NCBI GenBank assembly: GCA_951406725.2
Contig: OX597822.1
Coordinates: forward strand, 43,420,001 to 43,668,000
Origin: Octopus vulgaris
Taxonomy: Eukaryota
DNA: 248,000 nt
Reading direction: 5' to 3'
The notes under the pieces are model-generated. The model worked only from the letters and a program-made list of their open reading frames with translations, did no database searches and was not told the DNA's origin. The number at the start of each line of letters is the position of its first letter. Position 1 is the stretch's first letter. A program made the position numbers and the translations under genes. This document shows positions 137,821 through 143,812 of the stretch, in pieces.

Positions 137821-138632
137821 CGGACGTGCTGTCATTTCGGCTCCGAAGGTAATCGTTTATTTTGACTATTTATAGCCCATATTTTGTGTACATTTTTGTA
137901 AATAAGGTGTGTAAGGCACCCAACTTTCGTTTGAGTGCTTTTCCAAGGGAGGAATTCGCCCCTAGGGGCAGTTTCAACCCTATTTAATTTGTGTAATTTT
138001 CTTCTCGACATTAAAAAATGTCGAGAAATTTTATTGTAGAACGCTGGTCGCGTTCCTTTATGGACCAGCATTTAGCTCGTCTGGAAAGCTAGGAGAAAAA
138101 AAGAACTTATGCACGCAAAGTGCAAACCTGAATGACGTGGTAGTGAACGCTGCAACCACTTGCGGTAACAGCCCTGTCACCACTACCACCACCACTAACA
138201 ACAACAACAACGAGACTACTGCTGCTACCACCACCACCACCACCACCACCACCACCACCAACATAAATGATAAAAATGAAACTCACACGAATACTATTAA
138301 CAAAAACAACAACAACAAGAGCAACAATAAAATGAAATAAATATCTTACTATCTCATAGTGAAGACGTTAATATAAAAGAATCAACAACACCAGTAAATT
138401 TCGCTTACACTCTGCGTCAGAAAAAAGAAATAGTAAAATTTACGAATGAAGAGTTAATAGAAACGAGAGCACTCTTTACATCACAAGAGCAGGATTTAGT
138501 GCTGCATACACCTCAACACATAAAGGAACAAATAGAAAATAAGACAATTATACACAAAATTATAAGAAAAAACAAAAAAAACAAAATGAACAGATTACAA
138601 AAACGGACATAGAAAAGTGTTTAAAAAGCATA

Positions 138633-139543
138633 ATGAAAAAAAAAGAATATATAAACTGGGGTCCCCAGTTTAATACAGTGGTGGTCCGCTTCCATAACCA
138701 GGAAGTAGCAAAAGCTCACTCTACGGAGTCTTTGCAGAATGATGAGATCATTATGGTACCTTACTACAAAGGCCAGAGAGTGAGTAGAATTACTATTAAA
138801 AATGTACCCCCTGAGATTCCTAACAAATGGATAACAGGGGTAATCTGTTACCATTTGAAAACTATAGAGGCAGCAGTATACCAAAACGACAATTGGGGTG
138901 GAAAAACAATAGTAGTGACCATCCAGATTGAGGGGTCCTCAATCGAGAACCTACCTGATAGGATCCACTTAGAAAATGGACAAAGCCTATATGTTGTAGC
139001 AGAAGGCAAAAAGCCTAGATGCTACAACTGTGGCAGCCCAGAACATTTAATTGCCAAGTGCGCTCTGGCACAGAAAAAAAACAAGAAAGAACAAATCAGA
139101 AAACAAATAAAAAACCCTTGTTGCCAACACCAACACCAACACCAACACACTCAATTATGGAACAATGCCAAGAAAAACAACAAACCAGCAAACAAACCCC
139201 AAATACATCACCAAGAAAAAAACTACCAACACAATCGCTGTTGACGTCGCAACCAATTCAACATGCTGAACCAACAAAAAATAGACCAACACCAACACCA
139301 ACACCGAGGACGACAATTAAAAAGACAGAAAACAGTGACGAGAAGACAAATTCTACCCCTAACACTACAACAACACAAACACCGCACAAAACATCAAGAA
139401 TTTCTACAAGCATACATATTAACGCAAATGCTTTGCCTTTACCCCTTTCTGATTCGTCGGACGATGAAAGTTCGACGGAATGGCAAATAGCCACAGGGAG
139501 TAAAAGGAAAAGATCAAAAAAAGCCCACCAAACAAGGAAGTAA
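138633..139543 (+). pseudogene. Tx1 ORF1 (gag-like), frameshifted
   Basis: RCYNCGSPEHLIAKC zinc knuckle; low-complexity C-terminus in a shifted frame. Confidence 0.8.
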
Positions 139544-139975
139544 AGCAGGGAGATATTTAACTCCGGACAGCATCCCCCTAGACAATAAAAAAAATCAATG
139601 AACCCGCAAAACCACACACACAACTGACTGCAATAGACACAGACAATAAAAAATTAATGGATTACATTGCATCCAACACGGACATCTGTGAATATGACTT
139701 TAAGACAAACAATAATACGCGCACCACACCACCGAAACACATAAGAATTGTACACATAACACAAACACAACACCATACACTGAAAACAATATTTTCAAAT
139801 GCGGTAGGCGGGTTTCAACGATACCTCTCCAAAAAACTATACAAACACCTCATCAAAGACACTACAAAAGAAGAAGAAAAAAAATGAAACTTTCGAAATG
139901 AGTAAGTGACCTCCCCTCTTGCCTCTTGTCTCTTCCAATGTAGTGTGTGAAACGCAATTTTCGTAAACGTCAATT

Positions 139976-142900
139976 ATGCTTAAATTAGGTTGTGTGAATG
140001 TGCGTGGCTTGGCGTCGGCTTGGAAGCAAGGTTACCTTCTAAACGACATGAAGTCACTGAACGTGGATATAGTAGCTATCAGTGAAACTAGACTCAGCAA
140101 GCCGCGGGCCCTCGCGTCCATGTTTGGCGATCAATTTGACATTTATTTTTCTCCTTGTCTGCCGAACATGGGTGGTGGAGGTACCGCGGTGCTTTTTTGA
140201 AAGAGTCTAAATGTAAAAGTAAGAACAATATTCCTAGACCCGGAGGGTAGGCTGGTTGTCTTGGACGTGGATGGCAGAAATGGGTGTGCATTCCGTCTGA
140301 TGGCAGTTTATGCACCGCCCTTAACGGGTCGGGCGGATTTCTTCAGACGTCTAGAGGTTTCCTGGGTACGTCTAGACCTTTACTGTTAGTAGGGGATTGG
140401 AACGCTAGCTTGGACACGCATCTAGATTATGTGGGAATGGATAGGAATAGAAGGTGGTGTAAGTGCCTCAAAGACCTACTCAGACGTTTCCATTTGTCTG
140501 ACAGGTTCCGACTCGACCATCTGAACGTGCCAACGTGGACTTGGAAAAACCGCGTCGGATCGTCGAGATCTTATCTAGATAGAATTCTATGCAGGGCAGC
140601 GGATAGGGATAGTGTAGGATGTCCACAATTTAAAATAGTCAGCTACATAGATCACAAATTTGTGACGTGTACGCTCGACTTAGATAAGACACATAGACAG
140701 GGTCCCGGTTACTGGAAACTGAACACATCGCTCTTAGCGCGACAGGTTTACAGGAATCGGATTAGCGAGTTAATTAAGAGGGCGCTGACGGGAGCCGTCG
140801 TTAACAACCGCTGGTGGTACGCCCTGAAAATGGCAATAAAATCGGAATCAATTAGGTTTAGCAAGGAATTAGCGATAGATCGAAATAGGGTAGAGGGAGA
140901 CCTGGTTAAGAAACTAGAAGACGCACTTACCACTGGCAGCGCAACCAACGTGCTGGCTGCGAGGATGGCCCTCGACCAACACCTCAACGCCAAGCACGAG
141001 GGTTGGGTTGCGTCGTCAGAGCTAAAATGCGTGCCTTAAGGAACGAAGGGATCGAAGCTGCGCGAGATGCCCGGGTAGCGGAGGCGCAGCGTGGTAACAG
141101 AGCCACCATTCGGTCTCTAATAGATCAACAGGGATGCAGTTTACTCGAACCCGAAAGGATGTGTAAGGCCTTTCAACAACACTTTGCTCGACTGTTTGGC
141201 GCGAGTGGTGGGTCGGAACGCGGGATGGATTTCAGTGCCTACCTGACCGACCTGCCGCGGCTTTCGGCAAGAGAAGCGGAGTGTTGTGAAAGTCACATCA
141301 CAGCTGCTGACGTGCGGGAAGCGATGGCGGGCTGCGTGAGGGATAAGTCACCTGGATTGGATGGTTTACCCTACGAGCTGTATTTTCAAATGCCAGACTT
141401 GTTTGGCGACCTCTTGGCATCAGTCTACTGCAACTGGCAACAAAACGGGAGAATCCCCGGTTTCGTGAGCCGAGGTGCAGTGACGTTGCTGAAGAAAGAC
141501 CCAAACAAGGGGAATTTTATAGATAATTTCAGGTCTATCACTCTGCTCAACGCAGATTTGAAAATTTTGGCCAAAGTAATAGCCGAGAGGTTGGCGCTTG
141601 TCATTGGTAAACTGGTCGACAGGGCGCAAACATGCGCCGTGCCGGGCAGAACCATACATGACAACCTCCATCTGATGCGCTACATTGTGGACAGGGTAGT
141701 TAAGGATCCTGGCATGGGTGGGGCGCTGATCATTTTGGATCAGTCTAAAGGCTTCGATAGGGTCGACCATCGGTACTTGGCGGCCGTCCTCAGGGCGGCT
141801 GGCTTCGGTCCCGTCTTCCGCGGTTGGATCGCTGCCTTGTATAGCGGCATCCGATTGGTGATTCGGGTGAACGGTCACTTGTCGAAACCGTTTGACATCA
141901 CGCGTTCGGTCCGTCAGGGGTGTCCCCTGTCGGCGCTTCTGTATGTATTGACTCTCGAGCCGCTACTACGGAAGCTAATGACACTGAGGGGCATCCCACG
142001 GGAACTGGGTTGCGGGAAGAGCGTGTCGGCATATGCGGACGATGTCACCGTCATAGTGTCGAGCGACAAACACATCCAGATAATAGGCGAGACACTAAAA
142101 AAATACGAAACGGTGACGGGAGCGAAGATTAACCCGGAAAAGTCAGTGGGTTTGCTACTCGGCACCTGGAGAAGCAAGCCATGCCGTCCGACTGCGGCTC
142201 AGTAGTGGGACGCTGGACGGACAAACCGGTTAAATTGCTCGGGGTCTGGTTCAGTCCGAACCTCCAAATGGAGAAGAACTGGGACGAGATCACGAGTAGA
142301 GTGGTCGCTCTCAGCCAAACATGGGCCGAGAGAAAGCTGTCTCTAAAAGGCCGGGCGGAGGTGGCGAACGCGTACATCGCATCCGTCATCGATTACCGCC
142401 TGACCGTCGTACCTTGTCCCGACGCCACCATCACCAAACTGGAACGCATACACTTCCGCTTCCTGTGGAAGGGTGGCGTTCCGATGGTGAGGAAGTCCAT
142501 TTGCTGTTAACATCCATTGAATGGAGGACTGGGCATGCCGTGGTTGATGATGCGCAGGCATGCGCTGAGACTGCGACATCTCTGGAACTTCATCGACGAC
142601 GGTGAACAGGTGTGGGCGCCGTTTGTGAGGCACGCTTTCCCGCAGCTCGTCTCACTGACCGAACTGCAAACGTGGATCAAGAAGAGACCGAAACTGGGCG
142701 ATTGGCACCGAGAGTGTCGCCAAGCTCTACAGCAGCTATGCCGACCGGGGTCAAACTTGTGCAACTTACAAACGACTAAAGCGTTCTATAGAGGACTAGT
142801 GGAGGGGAGGTCCGACGACACACTCGGGGCAAACCTGGGCGTCGACGAGAAATTCCTAACCCGCCTGTTCATGACGACGTTCGGGCCGGGGCCTATGGAT

Positions 142901-143419
142901 AACTTCCAGAAATCCCTGGCTTGGCAGTGCTATCGAGACGCACTACCTCTTCAAGAGAAGAGCTACAGGCACGGTTCGAAAACCATCACAGGACCGACCT
143001 GCCCGAGATGCGGTCAGAGCGACGAAACCGTTCTGCACGCACTCGTGCAGTGTCCAGATATTTCGGAGCTGTGGACCTTCGTCGAACAGCTGTTGTCACG
143101 TGTAGGTCGGGCCCGCCTATCGGCCGAGTCTGTCTTGAGTATTGTTCCACCATCTTCCTTTAAACGGGAAGGGAAAACGGTTTTCGTTACGCTGATGGCT
143201 ATGGCGAAAGAATGTGTGTGGTGGACGCGTTTGAAAGGACTGCAAACAAACACCTTCCTCTCTGGTCAGTCTCTCGTCAACTTTTTCAAGTACCACTTGA
143301 AAAGGAGGATGAGAATAGAGAGGAAGGCTTTGTCGAACGAATGTTCTAATAAAAAGTGGGTAAAAGTGGCAAAAATGGTCAGTATGAAAGACGACACTAT
143401 TATAAGCATAAATCTGTAA
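139976..143419 (+). pseudogene. Tx1 ORF2 (APE + RT + zf-RVT), several frameshifts
   Basis: GCVNVRGL, AISETR, VGDWNA, SYLDR, DHK, KSPGLDG, VRQGCPLS, AYADD, CPRCGQSDETVLH. Confidence 0.93.
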
Positions 143420-143535
143420 CCAAAAGAGACAACGAGAAGTAAGGCGACTTACTCATGTGTTGGTTTTCGAACTGTCTGAGGCGACCTTGGTCTTTTTTGT
143501 AGGGTTTTCTTTCCAAGGCTACACCTAAACTGTGA

Positions 143536-143578
<43 letters not shown>

Positions 143579-143725
143579 CCTTTTTATACACCACACAACC
143601 CACAGATCCCTATTGATCAAACGTTTTTTTTTGTGCCCCACCCTTCCCACCTCGAAAAGAAAAAATTCTACATTGTATTTCGTCCATTTTTATTGTGTTT
143701 AGCCCTGTGTGGCTACAATAAAAAG

Positions 143726-143812
<87 letters not shown>

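Follow-up and report, generated by a model that had tools for sequence, protein, structure and literature searches.

A full-length LINE between ATCT arrays

The 248,000-nucleotide stretch of the Octopus vulgaris genome analyzed here (the window; contig OX597822.1, positions 43,420,001 to 43,668,000) carries a full-length LINE whose layout is complete: a 5' UTR, ORF1, ORF2, and a 3' UTR follow one another on the forward strand (Table 1). The element begins CGGACGTGCTGTCA... at 137821. When its first 300 nt were used as a genome query, all 40 scored matches started at query position 1–4. The 3' end reads ...GGCTACAATAAAAAGA(TT) at 143726–143728. Directly upstream, TRF reports an imperfect (ATCT)n array of 398 bp and, directly downstream, an array of 85 bp. 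A preliminary description of this DNA had stated that the first and last bases of the element abut long (ATCT)n, and its boundaries prove correct to within 2 nt.

The same description had called the element a complete two-ORF LINE. That is true of the architecture but not of the reading frames. Specifically, ORF1 has at least nine frameshifting indels relative to an open ORF1 copy, and in ORF2, compared with an intact copy, the frame shifts near 140358, 141000, and 142179 and is interrupted by stops at approximately 140199 (TGA) and 142509 (TAA). Judged by its sequence, the window copy is dead, as neither ORF is open. It is 93.7% identical overall to copy L013, in which ORF2 is intact, and it differs by 1.75% from the family majority over a 1.1 kb stretch spanning the endonuclease (EN) and reverse transcriptase (RT).

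The ORF1 remnant has a low-complexity, T/N-rich N-terminus and a CCHC knuckle, CYNCGSPEHLIAKC, at 139020–139061. Pfam identifies zf-CCHC and nothing else, and the predicted structure of the domain preceding the knuckle has a pLDDT of 39.5. The ORF2 remnant contains the APE endonuclease motifs SET (140081), GDWN (140392), YLD (140572), and DH (140650), the RT motifs RQGCPLS (141912) and YADD (142032), and a C-terminal CX2CX8HX4C at 143000–143053. In the 3' UTR, the conserved motif TAGCC-CTGTGT-GGCTA (143700–143715) precedes an AATAAA (143717–143722) that stops 5 nt short of the repeat.

Table 1. LINE copies, their parts, and adjoining repeat arrays in the window
Feature	Position	Strand	Remarks
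Very short 3' UTR fragment	2397–2583	+	ATCT arrays at 2333–2396 and 2582–2637
Two short 3' fragments (36754–36945, 37051–37600)	36754–37600	+	(TATC)26 between them at 36948–37051; then (TATC)n at 37599–37714
Sister family; 5'-truncated copy 99790–100886	99462–100907	+	(ATT)109 upstream, (ATT)7 downstream; 3' end ...GAGCCCTTATGGCTAATAAAAGAATAA
(ATCT)55 array; target flank lying 5' of the upstream truncated copy	136343–136562	+	TRF, junction reading
5'-truncated B-subfamily copy	136564–137425	+	Element positions ~4922–5913, ending ...GCCCTGTGTGTGCAATAAAGAAACA; blastn, 3' motif
Imperfect (ATCT)n	137423–137820	+	Serves the upstream copy as 3' tail and the full-length copy as 5' flank
Full-length LINE of subfamily A, non-coding	137821–143727	+	5.9 kb
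ORF1 remnant	138018–139975	+	ATG at 138018 matches the start codon of L018's open 665-aa ORF1
ORF2 remnant	139976–143419	+	1145 aa when intact; 3 frameshifts, 2 stops
3' UTR	143420–143727	+	(TA)n run, conserved motif, AATAAA
(TATC)21 array, serving as 3' tail and as target flank downstream	143728–143812	+	No poly(A); TRF
5'-truncated B-subfamily copy	160513–164174	+	93.6% identical to reference L010
5'-truncated B-type copy	181235–183436	+	Sole exception: 5' junction without ATCT; ATCT tail at 183435–183494
Two short 3' UTR fragments (185079–185224, ~185415–185604)	185079–185604	+	Head-to-tail train, ATCT arrays between and around

Two subfamilies, A and B, make up the family and are approximately 81% identical. 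The B copy starting at 160513 is truncated at element position ~2260. (ATCT)24 lies upstream of it at 160419–160514, with unique DNA before the array, and ATCT lies downstream at 164173–164192. This copy had been described as a young one at 160516 tied to (ATCT)n; the tie stands, and the wording is corrected to a 5'-truncated member of subfamily B. Six further fragments had likewise been tied to (ATCT)n. Beyond the copies at 137821 and 160513, there are in fact seven, six of which have ATCT at both ends, while the fragment at 181235 has it at the 3' end only. Arrays in the ATCT orientation make up 1.1% of the window. The enrichment of the window in ATCT arrays is 2.9-fold, and 13 of its 32 arrays touch a LINE copy. 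Arrays far outnumber the LINE copies counted so far.

Insertion into ATCT repeats

To the window copy we added 20 other full-length loci, of which about 17 are independent (L005/L012 and L006/L015 are segmental duplicates). (ATCT)n lies immediately upstream in all 20, with an identical first base of the element following ...ATCTATCTA. The 5' phase ...ATCTA/CGGACG, with the slash at the junction, is common to 18/20; the variants are two cases of ...ATCGA/CGGA and one offset by 2 nt. At the other end, all complete 3' ends (14/14 A-type and 16/16 B-type) continue into TATCTATC, and none of these 30 has poly(A). The 5' and 3' junction phases are 2 nt apart modulo 4. Junctions are base-exact, without spacer, and target-site duplications are unreadable inside a perfect repeat. 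Orientation relative to this asymmetric target is fixed: ATCT, never AGAT, lies on the sense strand of every copy in the window and at the 20 loci.

Truncated copies possess 5' junctions at differing internal positions of the element. A 5' junction is visible in 15 such copies, a small sample about half of which adjoins fetched full-length copies and hence is not fully independent; ATCT adjoins 14 of them. Set against the array coverage of the window, this count has a binomial p of ~7e-27, and chance is excluded as an explanation of these junctions. These copies also bear on the notion that (ATCT)n is merely the element's own 3' tail, in the manner of CR1-, L2-, and I-type LINEs, with the 5' arrays being tails of unrelated upstream copies or chance neighbors. 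Such a tail would explain why the repeat is present at every 3' end. The window copy itself follows an array that forms the tail of a different copy, and an upstream copy is present at several loci. However, a tail does not place ATCT at variable truncation points, and arrays that cover just 1.1% of the window are poor candidates for chance neighbors. Moreover, at least eight upstream arrays (L007 at 1068, L009, L011, L013, L016, L018 at 1210, L020, and window position 160419) are preceded by unique DNA rather than by a LINE; thus, such arrays are not simply another copy's tail. We consider this explanation highly improbable, and we reject its plain form on the truncated-copy 5' junctions together with the genome-wide counts that follow.

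The genome contains 73 exact 32-nt 5' ends, 61 of them of the main variant. Perfect ATCTATCTATCTA lies upstream of 33 of these 61, versus 0 for a reversed-pattern control, and the 33 perfect junctions are spread over 17 different contigs. Among 5,909 exact B-type 3' 25-mers, 3,906 run directly into perfect TATCTATCTATC, i.e., (TATC)3. A first look gave 610 candidates for the 5' end versus 2,942–4,951 for the 3' part, a difference expected from 5' truncation.

Copies also cluster. The 12 Mb contig C31 carries 8 of the best 40 5'-end matches, same-strand trains occur at C1:60.39–60.45 Mb, and newer copies sit within arrays beside older ones, generating head-to-tail trains. Clustering, the two duplicated pairs of loci, and the enrichment of the window in ATCT arrays would all fit a passive association arising from shared regions, from growth of arrays out of LINE ends after insertion, or from a few LINE-plus-array units multiplied by segmental duplication. 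We give that idea almost no credence: it is at odds with spacer-free junctions, invariant orientation, and perfect 5' junctions on so many contigs, and arrays born after insertion cannot come to lie 5' of copies truncated at arbitrary internal positions. From the truncated copies and from young A copies located in arrays that flank older B copies, we infer that the target arrays pre-date the insertions.

Kojima (2015) regards a LINE as sequence-specific when >20% of its flanks have one sequence type. Here, the repeat flanks 20/20 full-length and 14/15 truncated 5' junctions and 30/30 3' ends at the window and fetched loci, and 33/61 5' ends and 3,906/5,909 3' ends genome-wide. The (ATCT)n specificity put forward in the preliminary description is upheld by these counts along with the phase-locked full-length 5' junction and the invariant orientation. 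We are confident that a young, high-copy, APE-type LINE of the L1/Tx1 group uses target-primed reverse transcription to insert itself specifically in (ATCT)n.(AGAT)n, with ATCT always on the sense strand, and that the window copy is one dead full-length member.

The A copies lie 1–2.6% from the family majority; thus, the family is young. Copy L013 has an intact 1145-aa ORF2 with EN and RT catalytic motifs, and copy L018 has an open 665-aa ORF1. Among the 20 fetched copies and the window copy, none has both ORFs open. Youth, together with one intact ORF2 and one open ORF1, suggests that the family may still be active.

Clade placement

Membership in the L1 group (the L1 and Tx1 clades) is clear. 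Pfam finds Exo_endo_phos (8.6e-15) and RVT_1 (4.2e-27) in ORF2. In the PDB, ORF2 matches human LINE-1 ORF2p best (E 1e-49), with an alignment that spans EN and RT (residues 6–871); R2 matches at only 1e-18 and over the RT alone. A C-terminal zinc finger, CPRCGQGDETILHAFVQC, is present at residue 1008 of intact ORF2 (Pfam zf-RVT, E 5.5e-5, just below the gathering score).

Placement within the Tx1 clade, as originally described, is plausible, and the closest named relatives reside in U2 genes, (TTC)n, or (TC)n, as do Keno, Koshi, and Kibi. The separate ORF1 has a CCHC knuckle and is not of the L1 Transposase_22 type; BLASTP of this ORF1 against the lancelet Keno-like ORF1 gives no similarity. 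The maximum-likelihood tree of 41 RT domains, in which genomic targets (U2, (TTC)n, (TC)n) rather than Repbase references served to identify the anchors, has a polytomy as its backbone, with the octopod lineage as its own clade (100/100). In AU tests, a single clade with the Keno/Koshi/Kibi-like anchors receives p 0.46, and one with human and plant L1 receives a borderline p of 0.058. Membership in the L1 group stands, while the RT tree neither proves nor rejects the grouping with the anchors.

Three other assignments were rejected. The L1 clade proper has a poly(A) tail, loose TT/AAAA-like sites, and short target-site duplications, whereas here the 30 3' junctions lack poly(A) and the flanks are (ATCT)n. 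For the R1 clade, a PDB comparison at E 1e-3 yields neither the R1Bm nor the TRAS1 EN, and Exo_endo_phos_2 (PF14529) is not matched; in the RT tree, sequences bearing PF14529 lie outside, whether or not they also have RNase H. Finally, the R4/Dong clade has a C-terminal restriction-like endonuclease and a single ORF, in contrast to the N-terminal APE endonuclease and two ORFs found here.

A proposed mechanism for targeting, and a sister family

Across copies, AATAAA lies 5–11 nt ahead of the repeat, which suggests that transcripts probably end within the downstream AUCU units. In the mechanism we propose, the ORF2 endonuclease would nick one fixed position of the repeat unit on the AGAT strand, the nicked strand would pair with the RNA's AUCU 3' terminus, and reverse transcription would begin there rather than on poly(A). 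The ATCT strand would receive a second nick near ATCT(A). Each insertion would split one array in two and leave an array at its own 3' end. New arrays would be new targets, and LINE copies and arrays could multiply together. A link between the abundance of GATA arrays and LINE insertion is plausible.

A sister family, with 65–70% nucleotide identity to the ATCT family, is also represented in the window (Table 1). Genome-wide, (ATT)4 with at most one mismatch follows 21 of its 33 exact 3' ends. Judged by this family, in which (ATT)n is both tail and flank, tail and target change together.

Homing could conceivably be guided by the tail, with the endonuclease non-specific or dispensable: wherever a nick, a break, or a stalled fork in a fragile (ATCT)n array exposes a free 3' end on the AGAT strand, the 3' end of the RNA, (AUCU)n, would pair with it. 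The tail is the target repeat in both sister families, and a switch of target between such relatives is most simply made via the tail. Furthermore, poly(A) is not copied, so priming must take place on repeat units. However, the phase-locked full-length 5' junction speaks for second-strand cleavage at a defined position, no APE catalytic motif is missing from intact copies, and in the studied target-specific APE LINEs, R1Bm and TRAS1, the EN itself is sequence-specific (PMC1919474). We regard such homing as possible but unlikely; either the endonuclease or tail–target pairing may set the target.

More broadly, and only tentatively, we speculate that L1/Tx1-type LINEs have radiated in octopods and that the short repeat closing the 3' end of each LINE's RNA dictates its target (ATCT, or ATT in the sister family). 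A change of tail could then re-program the target, and LINEs and microsatellites would amplify each other. If so, each insertion would split an array, perhaps duplicate part of it, and add a new one, and a sizeable part of the unusually high cephalopod microsatellite load, as well as local strand-biased array fields, would be accounted for.

Site-specific LINEs are natural models of retrotransposon target choice and starting points for targeted gene-insertion tools. The ATCT LINE would extend the target repertoire to the GATA/ATCT class, which is among the most mutable and most used of tetranucleotide markers, and would provide a concrete, testable mechanism for the microsatellite richness of cephalopod genomes. 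The ATCT and ATT families are a natural related pair in one genome, in which domain and tail swaps can separate EN specificity from RNA-tail pairing. There is also a practical consequence: octopus GATA-type markers likely share flanking sequence via LINE copies, making locus-specific primers difficult.

Relation to known microsatellite-targeting LINEs

The closest teleost proteins to the ATCT-LINE RT are 38–39% identical; one (L027) has (TCT)n on both sides, and another (L028) is followed by (TC)n. A lancelet homolog with 41% RT identity sits between U2 snRNA genes of a tandem array. ATCT is absent after the Argonauta relative, and microsatellites do not flank the closest relatives outside the octopods; the ATCT trait is thus lineage-restricted.

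Microsatellite targets in the published lists consulted are ACAY, AC, TC, TTC, TAA, TTCC/TTTC, and TG (PMC3812793, PMC4494074, PMC4640811). GATA/ATCT is on none of these lists, and we found no LINE with this target in the searchable literature, with Repbase and Dfam outside the comparison; within that scope, the target is new, as had been suspected.

Most similar are the teleost Tx1 elements Kibi and Koshi and the crocodilian (TTCC)n/(TTTC)n Tx1 elements. These, too, are two-ORF LINEs with an APE endonuclease from the L1/Tx1 group; they enter a microsatellite in a single orientation, and their full-length as well as their truncated copies are flanked by the repeat at either end (PMC4494074, PMC3812793). 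Unlike the pyrimidine-only targets of these elements, the ATCT LINE's target is an A/T-rich tetranucleotide, and its host is a cephalopod. Because the octopod clade is not nested in the Koshi/Kibi-like group, ATCT specificity probably arose independently. Keno, of the Tx1 clade, shares the domain architecture but targets the multicopy U2 snRNA gene rather than a microsatellite.

Waldo, specific for (ACAY)n, and Mino, specific for (AC)n, belong to the R1 clade and, like the ATCT LINE, are microsatellite-specific and APE-type, one of them with a tetranucleotide target (PMC3812793). The ATCT LINE is of another clade, its ORF2 best matching human L1 ORF2p, with Exo_endo_phos and zf-RVT. Dong (R4 clade, (TAA)n) and Togen ((TG)n) are likewise microsatellite-specific non-LTR elements, and Dong-R4 is abundant and recently active in O. 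vulgaris (PMC13282606). Both encode a restriction-like endonuclease in a single ORF, unlike the ATCT LINE with its N-terminal APE. Finally, like CR1, L2/UnaL2, and the I factor, the ATCT LINE ends with a short tandem repeat in place of poly(A), and a conserved motif of the 3' UTR lies ahead of that repeat. The 5' flanks of those elements are unrelated to their tails, whereas the 5' flanks of the ATCT LINE are the same repeat as its tail.

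Evidence of target specificity for (ATCT)n

LINEs whose association with a microsatellite is confined to their tails carry the repeat at the 3' end alone, whereas target-specific LINEs carry it at both ends, including 5' ends that were truncated at arbitrary positions. In the octopus genome, (ATCT)n lies directly 5' of the full-length copy at all 20 loci sampled in addition to the window copy (10 kb each), with the common phase ...ATCTATCTA|CGGACG at 18 of the 20. The full-length junctions that depart from this phase comprise two reading ...ATCGA|CGGA and one shifted by 2 nt. 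Approximately 17 of these loci are independent, because L005/L012 and L006/L015 are segmental duplicates. At the other end, complete copies of both subfamilies, called A and B, run into TATCTATC (14 of 14 A-type and 16 of 16 B-type), and poly(A) occurs at none of these 3' ends.

Across the window and the 20 loci, the 5' junction can be seen in 15 5'-truncated copies, with truncation points ranging from element position 2260 to 5774. The junction adjoins (ATCT)n in 14 of them, two of the 14 arrays consisting of only 3-4 units; the lone exception, at window position 181235, has no ATCT there. Arrays in the ATCT orientation cover 1.1% of the window, and the probability that 14 of 15 junctions would fall in arrays by chance is ~7e-27. 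In every copy in the window and the 20 loci, moreover, the sense strand carries ATCT and never AGAT. Unique DNA precedes the upstream array in at least eight cases (L007 at 1068, L009, L011, L013, L016, L018 at 1210, L020, and window 160419). Thus, those arrays are not the tail of another copy. A local paralogous empty site in the window, 180.3 kb versus 184.6 kb, was uninformative.

The pattern extends across the genome (2.80 Gb, 227 contigs), in which counts were made with fully spelled patterns only. Exact 32-nt 5' ends occur 73 times, 61 of them being the main variant. A perfect ATCTATCTATCTA stands upstream of 33 of those 61, on 17 contigs, while the reversed-pattern control yields 0. This perfect 13-mer is present at only 10 of the 20 sequenced loci, though arrays are present at all 20, so a genome-wide value of 54% is what near-universal targeting predicts. 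The exact 25-nt 3' end of the abundant B subfamily is found 5,909 times, and 3,906 of these continue into perfect (TATC)3. Finally, young A copies often lie within the array flanking an older, more diverged B fragment, either upstream or downstream of it, which argues for insertion into pre-existing arrays. Such insertion would generate head-to-tail trains, exemplified by the 10 same-strand B-type 3' ends inside 55 kb at 60.39-60.45 Mb of contig C1.

Two other readings can be rejected. If the arrays were only the elements' own 3' tails, neither the arrays 5' of truncated copies nor the unique DNA preceding arrays would be expected. Passive association of copies and arrays is contradicted by the junctions, the uniform orientation, the chance calculation, and the genome-wide counts. 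The specificity for (GATA)n/(ATCT)n proposed in the preliminary description, and the enrichment of ATCT at 5' junctions on which it turned, are supported.

Element architecture and coding state

The window has a GC content of 36.6%, and microsatellites are very abundant in it. The features discussed here are collected in the table.

Features of the window, with positions in the window
Feature	Position	Strand	Remarks
Non-LTR retrotransposon, 5.9 kb	137821-143727	+	architecture complete
5' UTR	197 nt, from 137821	+	
ORF1	ATG at 138018	+	N-terminus T/N-rich, low-complexity; single CCHC knuckle 139020-139061
ORF2	ATG at 139976	+	APE-type endonuclease; RT (YADD at 142032); C-terminal CX2CX8HX4C
3' UTR	~300 nt, up to repeat	+	terminal order TAGCC-CTGTGT-GGCTA, AATAAA, repeat
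ATT-family copy	99790-100886 (within 99462-100907)	+	65-70% identical to A and B; (ATT)109 upstream, (ATT)7 downstream
Tandem duplications	81005-81993 and 123837-124829	mutually reverse-complement units	period ~490 nt, units 98-99% identical
tRNA-like SINE (…GGTTCCGGGTTCAGTCCCACTGCGTGGCA…)	~143960-144100		immediately 3' of the tail array of the element

The window copy had been described as a complete two-ORF element. This holds for its architecture but not for its coding. Specifically, its ORF2 has 3 frameshifts and 2 premature stops relative to the intact 1145-aa ORF2 of L013, and its ORF1 has at least 9 frameshifting indels relative to the open 665-aa ORF1 of L018. Judged by its reading frames, the window copy is without coding competence. 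The ORF1 domain preceding the knuckle reaches a mean pLDDT of 39.5 in a single-sequence structure prediction, too low to be of use, and sequence comparison found no similarity between ORF1 and that of a lancelet Keno-like element. No Rfam families were found at the window junctions. The tRNA-like SINE downstream of the tail array also occurs in the downstream flank of L015, an unrelated locus.

Subfamilies, abundance, and age

At 95-97% identity, the first 300 nt of the element match the genome at 40 or more sites, and each match begins at query position 1-4. A first look gives 610 candidates for this segment versus 2,942 and 4,951 for two near-3' segments, the pattern expected of frequent 5' truncation. 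The A subfamily, which holds the window copy, ends in ...GGCTACAATAAAAAG|TTATCT. The B subfamily (reference L010) is ~81% identical to A and ends in ...GGCTAATAAAGAAACA|TATCT. Over a 1.1 kb EN-RT stretch, A copies differ by 1-2.6% from the family majority, a sequence divergence that, under the criteria and calibration set out in PMC13282606, indicates recent activity. For O. vulgaris, that study reports 13 L1-Tx1 families that together account for 421 insertions classed as recently active; targets are not mentioned.

Copies cluster on contig C31, at C1:60.39-60.45 Mb, at C29:21.63-21.67 Mb, and at C5:85.027-85.029 Mb. Of the 40 best 5'-end matches, 8 fall on C31, a 12 Mb contig that makes up 0.43% of the genome. 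L005, L006, and L012 share a 3' break at element position 4459. In a B copy at L014 1114-1766 (element turned to +), element positions ~5290-5493 are triplicated in tandem, and window 36754-37600 contains two overlapping 3' fragments with (TATC)26 between them; both arrangements may reflect unequal exchange or aborted insertions. Many copies consist of just 140-320 nt of 3' UTR, for example at L018 1210-1818 and at window 185079-185604 and 2397-2583. Two short copies in L018 have nearly coincident starts (B positions 5594-5597; locus turned, element on +). These short copies could represent a non-autonomous derivative with the same tail.

A sister family at (ATT)n

The window also holds a copy of a related family flanked by (ATT)n. 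For its 3' region, a first look at the genome gives at least 1,355 candidates. Among 33 exact 24-nt 3' ends, perfect (ATT)4 follows in 13, and (ATT)4 with no more than one mismatch in 21. When up to 2 mismatches are allowed at the junction, 74 are found genome-wide, and the control yields 0. Specificity for (ATT)n is probable in this sister family. Tail and flank thus change in step between the ATCT and ATT families, and the endonuclease may have changed with them.

Junction geometry and a putative mechanism

Written in the TATC phase, flanks finish with ...TATC TA on the upstream side and open with TATC on the downstream side, which offsets the two junctions by 2 nt modulo 4. This geometry fits staggered nicks at fixed positions of the repeat unit. 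The length of a target-site duplication (TSD) cannot be read inside a perfect repeat. At L001, L007, and L014, variant units recur in the same order in both arrays (CATC CATC; TGTC runs; TAAC TAAC), which is what TSDs of ~30-90 nt would produce and is suggestive of them. A test for long TSDs based on variant units shared between flanks scored 2 of 15 real pairs versus 2.4% of 210 mismatched pairs, a difference that is not significant.

AATAAA lies 5-11 nt ahead of the first repeat unit. Given this position and the lack of copied poly(A), we infer that transcripts end within the downstream AUCU units. The notion is that these units would pair with the nicked AGAT strand and thereby prime reverse transcription on the repeat.

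Ahead of AATAAA, the motif TAGCC-N6-GGCTA is conserved: it occurs in both subfamilies, in the ATT family, in Argonauta, and in relatives further removed. A looser form, (T)AGCC-N4-6-GGCT(A) followed directly by AATAAA, spans window 143700-143722, and in the relatives from ENA assembly ERZ21867824 it appears as GGCCTTGTGCC. Compared with shuffled sequences, the A copy folds modestly better (z -2.0) and the ATT copy no better, and covariation supporting the pairing was not found. The motif may be a 3' recognition hairpin, for which folding lends weak support.

Arrays and strand bias

The AGAT class is the third commonest microsatellite class in the window, behind AT and AAT. The genome contains 1.56 million in-phase (ATCT)8 matches. 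Scaling from the window gives an estimate of ~130,000 perfect runs that are 8 units or longer and together make up ~10 Mb (0.36% of the genome). Exactly counted LINE copies number in the thousands and, with divergence allowed, perhaps ~20,000 by rough extrapolation. The suggestion that the family helps explain the abundance of GATA arrays is plausible: 13 of 32 window arrays touch a LINE fragment, but arrays outnumber copies. A considerable minority of the arrays, though not every one, could thus be explained by the family, with cause and effect unseparated.

Strand bias is strong over window 1-186000, where ATCT arrays outnumber AGAT arrays 34:4 (ATCT, 2,766 bp; AGAT, all short). AAT:ATT stands at 43:17, and AC:GT (31:24) and ACAT:ATGT (12:17) are unbiased. 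This pattern hints that the ATCT arrays are largely TE-linked. All 10 family copies in the window lie on the + strand, and 185.7-248 kb contains no ATCT arrays. The strand bias could stem from selection for one orientation within a large gene or from local spread that preserves orientation.

Relationship to known elements

Membership of the L1 group is clear from the encoded proteins. Specifically, the best solved-structure match of ORF2 is human LINE-1 ORF2p (E 1e-49 over EN and RT), Pfam matches it to Exo_endo_phos and zf-RVT and not to Exo_endo_phos_2, the R1/I type, and the element contains no restriction-like endonuclease. The nearest named RT homolog, at 66% identity, comes from the octopod Argonauta hians. 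For Tx1, the anchors were the nearest named homologs labelled by genomic context rather than named Tx1 reference proteins. The Branchiostoma lanceolatum (lancelet) homolog sits between U2 snRNA genes, that of the cod-like fish Muraenolepis orangiensis has (TCT)n on both flanks, and that of the characiform Prochilodus magdalenae is followed by (TC)n. All three lie inside predicted genes and resemble unannotated elements of the Keno, Koshi, and Kibi types, respectively.

A maximum-likelihood tree built from 41 RT domains places the octopod family with a set of unnamed relatives in a separate clade (100/100), and the tree has a polytomy for a backbone. Constraining this octopod clade to group with the Tx1 anchors costs 2.2 lnL (AU test, p 0.46), and constraining it to group with human and plant L1 costs 14.6 lnL (p 0.058). 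Thus, of the Tx1-clade assignment made earlier, the L1 group is secure, while Tx1 itself is plausible, not proven, and in line with the L1-Tx1 label of the O. vulgaris annotation.

ATCT flanks are absent at the Argonauta relative, an old copy, and at the nearest non-octopod relatives. The contig holding a 68%-identical relative stops short of its 3' end. The closest non-octopod relatives (~50% RT identity), on contig ctg122906l of ERZ21867824, belong to protein clusters with hundreds of members. They form perfect head-to-tail tandems with a period of 6,595 bp, and neither microsatellite flanks nor an Rfam hit was found between their units.

Microsatellite targets listed in the literature are ACAY, AC, TC, TTC, and TAA (PMC3812793), TTCC/TTTC (PMC4494074), and TG (PMC4640811). 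Full-text literature, Repbase and Dfam aside, yielded nothing relevant on a GATA/ATCT-targeting LINE, so the novelty claimed for this target holds within that literature. Recent octopus repeat libraries almost certainly include a consensus for the ATCT family, but a statement of its target was not found. Microsatellite-targeting LINEs as such are known; new, within that literature, are the target, the host group, and the presence of a sister family whose target differs.

The mechanism proposed here, reasoned entirely from sequence, resembles that known of other target-specific APE LINEs. In the RT tree, the octopod family falls outside the Koshi/Kibi-like group of microsatellite-flanked fish elements, and its microsatellite targeting is therefore probably of independent origin.
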